A stretch of DNA of 64,000 nt from Pavona decussata (taxonomy: Eukaryota). The position numbers and the translations under genes were made by a program. Numbering within the stretch: the stretch's first letter is position 1; every line of letters begins with the position of its first letter. The stretch covers positions 1,240,001-1,304,000 of the forward strand of contig CDRNST010000226.1 in NCBI GenBank assembly GCA_977016875.1. The letters are read 5' to 3'. The notes beneath the pieces were generated by a model. The model was not told the DNA's origin. It saw nothing but the letters and a program-made list of their open reading frames with translations, and made no database searches. Below, piece after piece: positions 38,225 to 41,239 of the stretch.

Positions 38225-41200
38225 TGCGTGGGCCGAGTGAAGATCTCAGAACATTGGTAGCTAGCTGGTGTACACAGCACATGGGACTTAATTGAATATC
38301 ATTCCTTTATTAGCATTTTATGGAAACACAGCTTTTTAAGTCTGTCCACGTTGGCCAGTTGTTTAGATGAAACAAATCTATTCGCTAACCATGCGATGCT
38401 CACAGGCCGCGTGGTCTTTACCTGGGTGTGTGGGCGACTGCTGAGGAATAGTGGACGATGATGACCTGCCTTGCATCTAAGTTTGAAAGATTTACGAATA
38501 TCCAGTGTAAAAACGCAAAGGTGTCTGTAGCCAGGTTTTCCTCGCGAAGCTTGGACCTGGATACGAAAAATAAATGAATAAAAAAATAAATAAATAAACA
38601 ATTTGTTACCAAATTGGATAAGATGACAAATAGTACTGTACATTAGCACTCATTAAAGGGGCAGTATCATGGGAGATCGATGGGAGATATCGTGATTTTT
38701 GGCCAAAATTCACTACTGAAATTTAAACTTTGAACATTGTGTTAACTAATTTCTGAATCGCTAATTTAAAGAAATGTTAATAGTGATTCTAAGACGAAAG
38801 GTTGAACCAAAATATAGTACAACCGGCGATTTTTAGTACGTTACAACAGCGAAATTTGAAAACGTCCGCCAGACGTTTTCAAAATTTGAACCCCTCTCTA
38901 TCTTGGTCATCTGCCGGCGAAAATATCCTTGGATAGTTTCTTTGCATTCTGATAGTCTTTTAATGGAATTTTGTCATTATATCTTGGCTGCTATCAACCG
39001 AATAGCGTCTTTCCGATTTTCGATGTGTTACTAAAAATAGCGTGATACTGTCCCTTTAAATGGTGTCACTTTAGGCTTACAGATCCGTAGATCAGTTGAT
39101 ATTATTGATAACAGCGCTTGTGCATTTCACAAAATGCTTTATTTTGCTCCTTATTTTCCGAGTAAAGATCGTTTTTGTAATGTCGGAAGAAATTGGAAAC
39201 AATTATCAACAGTTTTGTCGGTTGTGTTGTCAACGTTCAATTAAGCTCTAACTGCGCGCTGTCTTTGAGACAATTGCTTCCGGAAGCATCCAAATCAACT
39301 TCCGGTTTAATCTATAGCATGTGGACGCCCAGCATAGCCAAAGCTATGTTTAACCACGTGACCACCCACGCATCCGTACTCGAAGATCGAAGAAAAATTT
39401 TTGCATTGAGAAATGAATAAATAGATTGATCACTCTCCCATGAAACCGATGAAAGCTGGGAGGTCAGCATTGGTTTAGTTTATCGTTTTAAAAGTTGACT
39501 TGTCTGTCGCCGTCAGCCAAAGACGACCTGTTCTAGACGGAATCCAATACTGCGCTGAGAACGTTTACATCATTACCACCAAATAAAGTGAACCAAGCAG
39601 ATTATCGACACTTGCCGACAATGTTCGGGATTGGCTCGTATTTGTTCGGAAATGGTTGTCATGGTTTTGTTGTGGAATAATTTTGCCCTCCCACGCAAGT
39701 ATCACGCAGGTCTGTCGTTTTTCATTACGAATGTTTAACGAGCCGTAACGCCTACGATTATATGCATAATTGGTTACAACACCAAAACCGTACGCACAGG
39801 CGATCGGTAGCTCATTTCGCACAGTATTTGCCACACGAGGATACACAGCCCTGCGGTGTCAAAGCAGTTCAGAAAATATCAGGCCATTTCCAAGCGCTGA
39901 AGCCAAGATCTAACAAGAAGACCTCTCCACGCGATTCGAATTGGGCATGTTAACAATGGCAAATCCACGTTTTCCCGCTTATGAAGGTAACTATTTTCTA
40001 AACATTTTTTAATAAGTCCTACTGGACGAACGTCGTGTCATTGGTGGATCAGTATTCAATCGCAGGAGAAAAAACATAACTCCGTGGGCAGAAATTTCGA
40101 AACATTAGATATCTTGAACCATGTGAAAAAAATTCTATTTCTCTCGCGCTGTGCCGCTGTTTGGATATAATTTACACGGTTTAAACTGCCCCTTCATCGC
40201 ATGAGTGACCATCACTTCACCTACACATATAATTTGCCCTTATAGAATAAGCTCAGCTTTGTGTAAATAGAAACGTAACATAAAGTAGGGCATTCCTATA
40301 GCACCAACGTAGTAAATGACAACAGTTTCTAGAACTTGTAGGCTGTTTGAAGTGTGTGTCAGTCACATCGGAAACGCTTTCCCACACAGATCACTTGTAT
40401 ATATAACTTTTGCTCGACTAATACGTGTGTTGATTTTTTTGGAGGTTTGACTTAATCTTTTTGGCGTAATATCCTCGATTTTTAAAACTATTGTTTCAAA
40501 CCGTTAAAGCTGAAGACTGTATACTCTATAAATCTTAAAGCTCAAGAAAGTGGCAAGAGTGGATACTTGTGCGCAGTTATTTTTCAAAGAGAAGTCTGTT
40601 TTGAAGGTTCTGTTCAATAAGAAATATATGCAGCACTCGCCCACACGTTTCTGTCACATTCAGTAATCCTCGATAAACTACTGGGAAAAGAAACTCAAGC
40701 TCATTCTCCATTTAAAGTTTCGCAGTTGAAAGTGCTTTCTTCCGGGTATCAATTGGTAACATTAACGAAAGGCTGAATTCCTGTGTCCAAAACTTCAAGT
40801 CATATATGTAGTCCTCCCAACCGACGTGCGTGGGTGTTATGAAGATCTAGTGACTTCGACTTAAAGCAGGCGCTAAACATTATTTGTCATAATCTTCTTT
40901 TTTTCCCTTGAATTCCTTCGGCGAAACAGAAACTTAAAGCCAATAGAGACCTTCGCAATAACAAGGGTTGTTTAAGACGAAAAGGTGGGCACACTGTAAG
41001 CCTGAAAAACGTTACGTTGCACAGATGAACTCCCCCAGTCCCACCCTTCTGGTTCAAAGGGGTAACCTCCTTGGACGTTTATTTTTTTTTTATTGGTATT
41101 TTATTCATTGCATCTTTTCTCAAACACTGGACTCAGTCAGATGCAGCCGCCGTTTTCGTGAAGGGATTAACCTATTTCATAACATCACATTGATAAATTT

Positions 41201-41239
41201 ATGATAAATTCAAGTCGACTCCGCAGTTTGCGCCCACGA
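38225..41239. promoter_or_regulatory. Homotypic cluster of EGR-type sites (candidate distal autoregulatory enhancer)
   Basis: Seven GCGTGGGCG-like sites in 3 kb, at 38225, 38427, 39363, 39688, 40638, 40827 and 41231. Confidence 0.55.
38657..39055. mobile_element. Kolobok-like MITE, copy 2
   Basis: TTAA on both sides (38653-38656 and 39056-39059); TIRs AGGGGCAGTATCA / TGATACTGTCCCT. Confidence 0.7.

Follow-up and report, generated by a model that had tools for sequence, protein, structure and literature searches.

Conserved EGR-type sites around an alternative promoter of a coral EGR gene suggest that the factor controls production of its own shortened form

The gene for the zinc-finger factor EGR lies on the plus strand of a 64,000-nucleotide (64-kb) stretch of the genome of the coral Pavona decussata (GenBank assembly GCA_977016875.1, contig CDRNST010000226.1, positions 1,240,001 to 1,304,000). 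This whole stretch is termed the window, and coordinates are counted from its first letter unless another locus is named. The main exons of the gene are proximal exon 1 (53836..54225, plus strand), which contains a start codon at 54015, ends in phase 1 and is defined by mRNA contigs of related corals, and exon 2, whose coding part (54679..55787, plus strand) carries three Zif268-type fingers and is defined by the relatives' mRNA contigs together with matches to EGR1/Zif268 chains. Further upstream, a cluster of seven EGR-type sites spans 38226-41239. Termed an autoregulatory enhancer in a first-pass annotation of the window, this cluster was placed in intergenic DNA 13-16 kb upstream of the gene. 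That placement does not hold: a coding first exon of EGR itself lies within the interval, with two of the sites in its promoter and three in its intron, all three within the first 1.3 kb of that long intron. The region is not intergenic because an alternative promoter, a first coding exon and the start of the long intron lie there. The conserved sites around EGR's own alternative promoter suggest that the factor controls production of a shortened version of itself.

The distal promoter occupies a conserved block (39202..39946, plus strand) that was delimited by alignment to Acropora digitifera and across four corals, namely the window species, A. digitifera, Stylophora and Pocillopora damicornis. 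Over 39202-40018, the window is 73% identical to A. digitifera (L003:9246-10073; 856 nt, E 1e-121). Further islands conserved with this species are found at 40183-40417, 40603-40672, 40824-40896, 41196-41261 and 41632-41786; among these smaller islands, the ones cited here as support each centre on a site of the cluster. Motifs in the promoter block include ETS-type CTTCCGG/CCGGAAG at 39277-39305, an E-box at 39355 and several ATTGG boxes. A 29-nt block that is invariant in the four corals (39754..39782, plus strand), located approximately 165-190 nt upstream of the distal ATG, combines a TATA-like sequence with ATTGG and contains TATATGCATAATTGG; we infer it to be a candidate core promoter. 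Another invariant block of 19 nt lies at 39646-39664 (TCGGAAATGGTTGTCATGG). Downstream, in intron 1, the four corals also share an invariant TGTATATATA (40396..40405, plus strand), which is preceded by an invariant ATCGGAAAC at 40367-40375.

The coding part of the alternative first exon (39947..39986, plus strand) reads MLTMANPRFPAYE plus one base. From an ATG at 39947 it runs for thirteen codons and that extra base, with a GT donor directly after it at 39987. Its phase 1 ending matches that of proximal exon 1, and a splice to exon 2 at 54679 preserves the reading frame, continuing as G-DLDLDY. Both exon and donor are conserved in Acropora, Stylophora and Pocillopora. In A. digitifera, moreover, the coding range on record for the gene begins inside the main conserved block, 14.6 kb before the main start codon. 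Those recorded for Stylophora, P. damicornis and Exaiptasia (sea anemone) likewise start with an exon of this kind, which precedes the main exons by 10-12 kb. Several NCBI protein models carry the distal N-terminus, and P0125, P0123, P0145 and P0144 start MLAMA(N/Y)PRFPAYE-GDLDLDY. By species, the X3 isoforms of A. digitifera, A. millepora and A. palmata start MLAMANPRFPAYE-GDLDLDY, and X3 of Stylophora pistillata and X2 of P. damicornis start MLAMAYPRFPAYE. These models come from five coral species; the Exaiptasia exon, which encodes MSYVPRFPAYE plus one base and then meets a GT, was read from the coding range and the DNA. The short isoform is predicted to keep the three zinc fingers and to replace the conserved 70-residue N-terminus of the long form with 13 residues. 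The leading motif of that 70-residue N-terminus, or close variants of it, recurs at the N-terminal end of EGRs in corals, anemones and soft corals, and a Pfam scan of the N-terminus returned no family.

Two classes of site were counted: matches to the pattern GYGTGGGHG, and 9-mers with at most one mismatch from GCGTGGGCG. All seven sites in the first-pass list are found at their places and on their strands, each within one mismatch of GCGTGGGCG, as are the outliers reported at 33115, 36682, 52805 and 53797. The first 30 kb is free of GYGTGGGHG matches, as had been stated, and the five matches reported to fall within 3 kb lie even closer together (38428-40836, 2.4 kb). The 64-kb window contains 8 such matches, compared with 1.0 expected from whole-window dinucleotide shuffles. 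The claim of clustering beyond chance thus stands, but the background first used for it was too lenient. This is evident from the ratio of observed to expected CpG dinucleotides (CpG o/e), which is near 1 across the 25-kb gene-free stretch at 30-54 kb and 0.2-0.5 in the adjacent gene bodies; because of this, CpG-containing motifs are commoner in the gene-free stretch.

The test was accordingly repeated with Markov models (order 1 and order 3) built from 30.0-53.8 kb only, over 1500 simulations. Against these models, the 30.0-53.8 kb stretch holds 6 GYGTGGGHG matches (0.35-0.40 expected) and 9 of the 9-mers close to GCGTGGGCG (1.2-1.3 expected). In the densest 3 kb, the corresponding counts are 5, with a maximum of 2 across the simulations, and 7, with a maximum of 4. 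Density above that of local intergenic DNA, a check proposed along with the enhancer idea, is therefore found, as 0 of the 1500 simulations reach the observed value. A further control considers all 8-mers: TGCGTGGG occurs four times in the 64 kb, each time inside 38225-40834, and equally tight clustering is seen in just 3 of the 2131 8-mers that have exactly four separated copies. The site cluster is real and not a product of chance.

Within the interval, the sole repeat is a miniature inverted-repeat transposable element (MITE) of approximately 420 bp (38657..39077, unstranded), which lies outside the regulatory module, some 125 nt before the conserved promoter block. Its ends form imperfect terminal inverted repeats of approximately 20 nt (TTAAAGGGGCAGTATCATG versus TTTAAAGGGACAGTATCACG), and its contig depth is 10^5-fold above that of the flanks (summed depth around 10^5). 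Contigs of two related species (organisms B and C) skip 38657-39077, and the MITE is a recent insertion because it is absent here in these species. None of the sites lies in the MITE; their flanks are unrelated and have single-copy depth, which agrees with the earlier assertion that the sites are not repeat-borne.

Conservation of the sites was assessed in the four corals by their offsets from the distal ATG (39947), and four of the seven, here named A, C, D and E, keep the same orientation and similar offsets in all of them. Site A (GCGTGGGTG, 39363..39371, minus strand) is found 584 nt upstream of the distal ATG in the window (-584), at -604 in A. digitifera, at -559 in Stylophora and at -563 in P. 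damicornis. All three other genera match it exactly, and it starts a 19-nt invariant block at 39363-39381. Site C (GTGTGGGCG, 40638..40646, minus strand) lies 691 nt past the distal ATG and is unchanged in each of the four corals (+691 in the window, +683 in A. digitifera, +682 in Stylophora and +677 in P. damicornis). The same is true of site D (GCGTGGGTG, 40828..40836, plus strand), 881 nt downstream (+881, +891, +863 and +851, in the same order), where TGCGTGGGTGT is invariant. Site E (TCGTGGGCG, 41231..41239, minus strand) lies 1284 nt downstream (+1284, with +1269 in A. digitifera and +1216 in Stylophora) and appears in P. damicornis at +1195 as CCGTGGGCG; CGCCCACG is invariant in the four corals, and the ninth base differs in Pocillopora only (8/9 exact). 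Next to site A, a CACGTG E-box and a GLI-type GACCACCCA adjoin or overlap the site (39355-39381), and Stylophora and Pocillopora have 4 bases inserted between the E-box and site A.

The remaining three sites are confined to narrower lineages. The site at 38226..38234 (GCGTGGGCC, plus strand) is lineage-specific: it is unchanged in near relatives (no difference at 38225-38234), whose differences were read up to 39335, hence covering both this site and the one at 38428, and it has no alignable orthologous sequence in Acropora, Stylophora or Pocillopora. A Pocillopora sequence at L016:8794 was considered as its orthologue and rejected, the flanks being unrelated. The site at 38428..38436 (GTGTGGGCG, plus strand) is specific to the window species, as its first G is an A in all four near-relative runs, and no orthologue was found in the distant corals. 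Site B (GCGTGGGAG, 39688..39696, minus strand) is also lineage-specific, and aligns with degraded sequences elsewhere (ACGTGGGAA in Acropora, GCGTAGGTG in Stylophora and Pocillopora). In A. digitifera, an additional TCGTGGGCG is present 196 nt upstream of the distal ATG (L003:9805), where the window and the other corals read CGCCTACGA; this is a case of site turnover within a conserved promoter.

Conservation between corals, which had been put forward as a check on the cluster, is thus found for the sites at 39363, 40638, 40828 and 41231 and not for those at 38226, 38428 and 39688. Exact preservation of a 9-mer in all three other genera is uncommon, applying to 2.5% of those in 39150-41850 and to 0.6% downstream of the distal exon. 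Sites A, C and D are among these exact 9-mers, and the probability of at least three of five sites being so is 1.4e-4. Furthermore, 18 invariant blocks of at least 8 nt occur in 37-44 kb, four of which are EGR-type sites; in the intron, the proportion is three of seven. The view that the four sites are under strong purifying selection in corals of both major scleractinian clades is supported by these comparisons.

EGR loci of other cnidarians were also retrieved. In the sea anemone Exaiptasia, a perfect GCGTGGGCG (minus strand) is located 216 nt upstream of the distal ATG and a GCGTGGGTG (plus strand) 719 nt downstream, in flanking non-coding DNA that cannot be aligned with coral DNA. For Desmophyllum, the Tara contig and two Pocillopora loci, the available sequence ends short of the distal region.

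EGR itself is the best candidate for the protein that would bind the conserved sites. The recognition helices of its encoded fingers, RSDELTR, RSDHLTT and RSDERRR, have base-contact positions equal to those of Zif268 in solved DNA complexes, and the finger domain matches solved EGR1/Zif268 chains with an E value of 2e-45. The contact residues of Zif268 read GCG-TGG-GCG. All of the conserved sites have (G/T)NGTGGGNG in common.

The proximal promoter (53373-53827, approximately 450 bp) contains seven half-sites (TGACG/CGTCA) of the cyclic AMP response element (CRE) and no CArG box or serum response element (SRE). It also contains a fifth EGR-like site, GAGTGGGCG (53797..53805, minus strand), approximately 35-70 nt upstream of mRNA 5ʹ ends; the CGCCCACTC at 53797 recurs, equally far from the main ATG, in all hexacoral loci retrieved, including those of Nematostella and Exaiptasia. 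A weaker EGR-like site, TCGTGGGTG (52805..52813, minus strand), lies in a conserved block approximately 1.2 kb upstream of the proximal ATG, and the ACACCCACG at 52805 is kept in Desmophyllum, the Tara contig, Acropora, Stylophora and two Pocillopora loci, that is, in all stony corals examined.

Taken together, these features are best explained if the cluster marks both a second, EGR-responsive promoter of the gene and the beginning of its long first intron, with a short isoform produced from this promoter and autoregulation acting through a switch of isoform; the probability of this reading is put at roughly 0.6. In such a scheme, the CRE-rich proximal promoter would make EGR first. The protein would then bind the fixed sites that flank the distal exon (one approximately 580 nt upstream and three 690-1290 nt downstream) and thereby set the output of the distal promoter, which would drive the exon at 39947-39986, spliced in frame to exon 2. 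The identity of EGR as the binder, the direction of its effect and any difference in behaviour of the short isoform are presumptive parts of the scheme, and the autoregulation and expression pulse suggested in the first-pass annotation are likewise presumptive. A more specific form of it appears doubtful: full-length EGR, rapidly produced by the proximal promoter, might turn on the short form, which might compete for the same sites and end the response, a feedback switch kept in corals and sea anemones. These two groups separated several hundred million years ago.

Several observations weigh against an EGR-responsive second promoter. No coral site is a perfect GCGTGGGCG, position 1 is a T in site E, and position 2 is an A in the proximal site; moreover, conservation is lacking at three of the seven listed sites. 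No transcript joins the distal exon to exon 2 among the mRNA contigs of related corals: all nine map to proximal exon 1 and exon 2, and their 5ʹ ends fall at 53771-53870. The shorter proteins in the protein clusters are intron read-throughs, and a word search on residues 1-40 of the short isoform returned long-isoform cluster representatives only, so that transcript-derived short forms are not detectable in this way. Contigs from RNA libraries do cover 38.1-41.4 kb; they are unspliced, genome-colinear and as deep as the flanks, look like carried-over DNA, and are uninformative on transcription because they are unspliced and as deep as the flanks. Expression of the short isoform is therefore a prediction based on NCBI gene models and on the conserved start codon, peptide, donor and phase. 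Beyond corals, Nematostella has no distal exon within 10 kb upstream, and the octocoral Dendronephthya has neither a distal exon nor a site within one mismatch over the same distance. An ENA contig likewise has no distal exon within 14.5 kb upstream.

The imperfect match of the coral sites to the consensus bears on one rival in particular, which is that the conserved GTGGG-core motifs are functional but are read by a factor other than EGR. Other C2H2 factors, of the SP/KLF or GLI/ZIC type, could read this core, and bHLH or bZIP proteins could act at CACGTG or ACGTG, leaving an ordinary promoter and intronic enhancer with no autoregulation. In the window and in Acropora, site A overlaps the GLI-type GACCACCCA and abuts CACGTG, while site D is preceded by ACGTG. 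However, Stylophora and Pocillopora have lost the GLI-type extension of site A and kept its EGR-type core, and G/T-N-G-T-G-G-G-N-G is all that the four conserved sites share with one another and with the two in Exaiptasia. The perfect EGR consensus does occur in Exaiptasia, and the locus itself encodes a factor with exactly matching specificity residues, leaving a non-EGR reader unlikely. Less likely again is a classical enhancer whose target is EGR's proximal promoter, or else the tropomyosin-like gene that lies 11 kb upstream, with the distal exon as a rare or mis-modelled by-product of enhancer transcription. Enhancers are often transcribed, every assembled mRNA starts at the proximal promoter, and synteny with the tropomyosin-like neighbour is kept in Stylophora, Pocillopora and Exaiptasia. 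Such a by-product would nevertheless have to account for a start codon, a PRFPAYE peptide, a GT donor and a phase 1 ending that are kept from corals to the sea anemone while the surrounding DNA has diverged past alignment, and for independent NCBI models in five coral species that splice the distal exon to EGR exon 2.

An effect of chance, composition or repeat spread is exceedingly improbable. The motif does contain a CpG and falls in a gene desert that is not depleted of this dinucleotide, unlike the adjacent gene bodies, and a MITE has inserted into the interval. Chance and composition are nonetheless ruled out by the local Markov backgrounds, whose simulations never reach the observed density, together with the control across all 8-mers; a repeat origin is ruled out as well, only 38657-39077 being repeated and the sites being single-copy and outside it. 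Additionally, four sites are exact in three other coral genera, save for the 8/9 match of site E in Pocillopora. An EGR-responsive alternative promoter thus remains the preferred account of the cluster.

The neighbourhood of the gene is itself stable. From stony corals to Exaiptasia, the order is a tropomyosin-like gene (minus strand), EGR (plus strand) and a RING-finger gene (plus strand), as seen at loci L014, L016 and L021; the neighbours in the window lie at 28077-28766 (minus strand) and 57535-59475 (plus strand). A PBP-domain gene (minus strand) comes next in order at the Desmophyllum, A. digitifera, Stylophora and Pocillopora loci. The CpG o/e profile of the window is 0.2-0.5 at 4-12, 22-30 and 54-64 kb and approximately 1 at 30-54 and 14-20 kb, which fits gene-body methylation of the neighbours combined with a probably unmethylated region upstream of EGR. 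Within the gene, the intron before exon 2 (54226-54678) is read through at the start of several database proteins of related species (for example, P0004, P0014, P0018 and P0136), and unspliced EGR transcripts seem to be common in RNA assemblies.

EGR responds quickly in wound and stress programmes, and the stress responses of corals are under intensive study. The locus described here offers a cis-regulatory module resolved to single motifs, whose position and orientation are kept in the two major clades of stony corals, with an echo in a sea anemone; to our knowledge, there are few such finely conserved cis-modules in cnidarians. If EGR does drive its own truncated form, such feedback would be an ancient and uncomplicated way to curb an immediate-early response. 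Literature searches turned up no account of this distal promoter in corals or of its sites.

The closest parallel in an early-branching animal is the acoel Hofstenia miamia, whose egr locus is reported to contain an egr-responsive accessible peak with Egr motifs (bioRxiv 10.1101/2024.07.04.601589), in agreement with the first-pass statement that EGR sites are present at Hofstenia's own egr locus. Both animals have Egr motifs in the regulatory DNA of egr, which in Hofstenia is wound-induced. However, chromatin data and knock-down of egr define the peak in Hofstenia, whereas the coral module is known from sequence and conservation only, and an alternative first exon falls within it. In mammals, the promoter of EGR1 (NGFI-A) has an EGR-binding site (EBS) near its stimulus-response elements, and this EBS mediates repression. 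The coral CGCCCACTC resembles it in lying just upstream of the proximal start, amid CRE half-sites. The mammalian EGR1 promoter also has CArG/SRE boxes; in the coral, CRE half-sites rather than CArG/SRE boxes dominate the proximal promoter, and most of the sites surround a second promoter 14 kb upstream.

Other members of the family offer partial likenesses. Element A of Krox20 (EGR2) is a far-distal autoregulatory enhancer without an exon that acts in the vertebrate hindbrain. Like the coral module, it is a conserved cis-element at the locus of the factor itself, with several EGR-type sites for which feedback is proposed. Unlike element A, the coral module holds a promoter and a coding first exon, so that feedback would also alter the protein made. 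Drosophila stripe, another EGR family gene, produces A and B isoforms from alternative promoters and is subject to positive autoregulation. Here the likeness lies in two promoters that give different N-termini and the same fingers. EGR3 has N-terminally truncated isoforms made via internal translation starts, and these shorter proteins, like the predicted coral isoform, keep the fingers without N-terminal activation sequence. The route in the coral would differ, with an alternative promoter and exon in place of an internal translation start. Sites for self-binding are already known from other EGR genes, and what distinguishes the coral locus is the framing of an alternative promoter by such sites and their conservation in fine detail across hexacorals.

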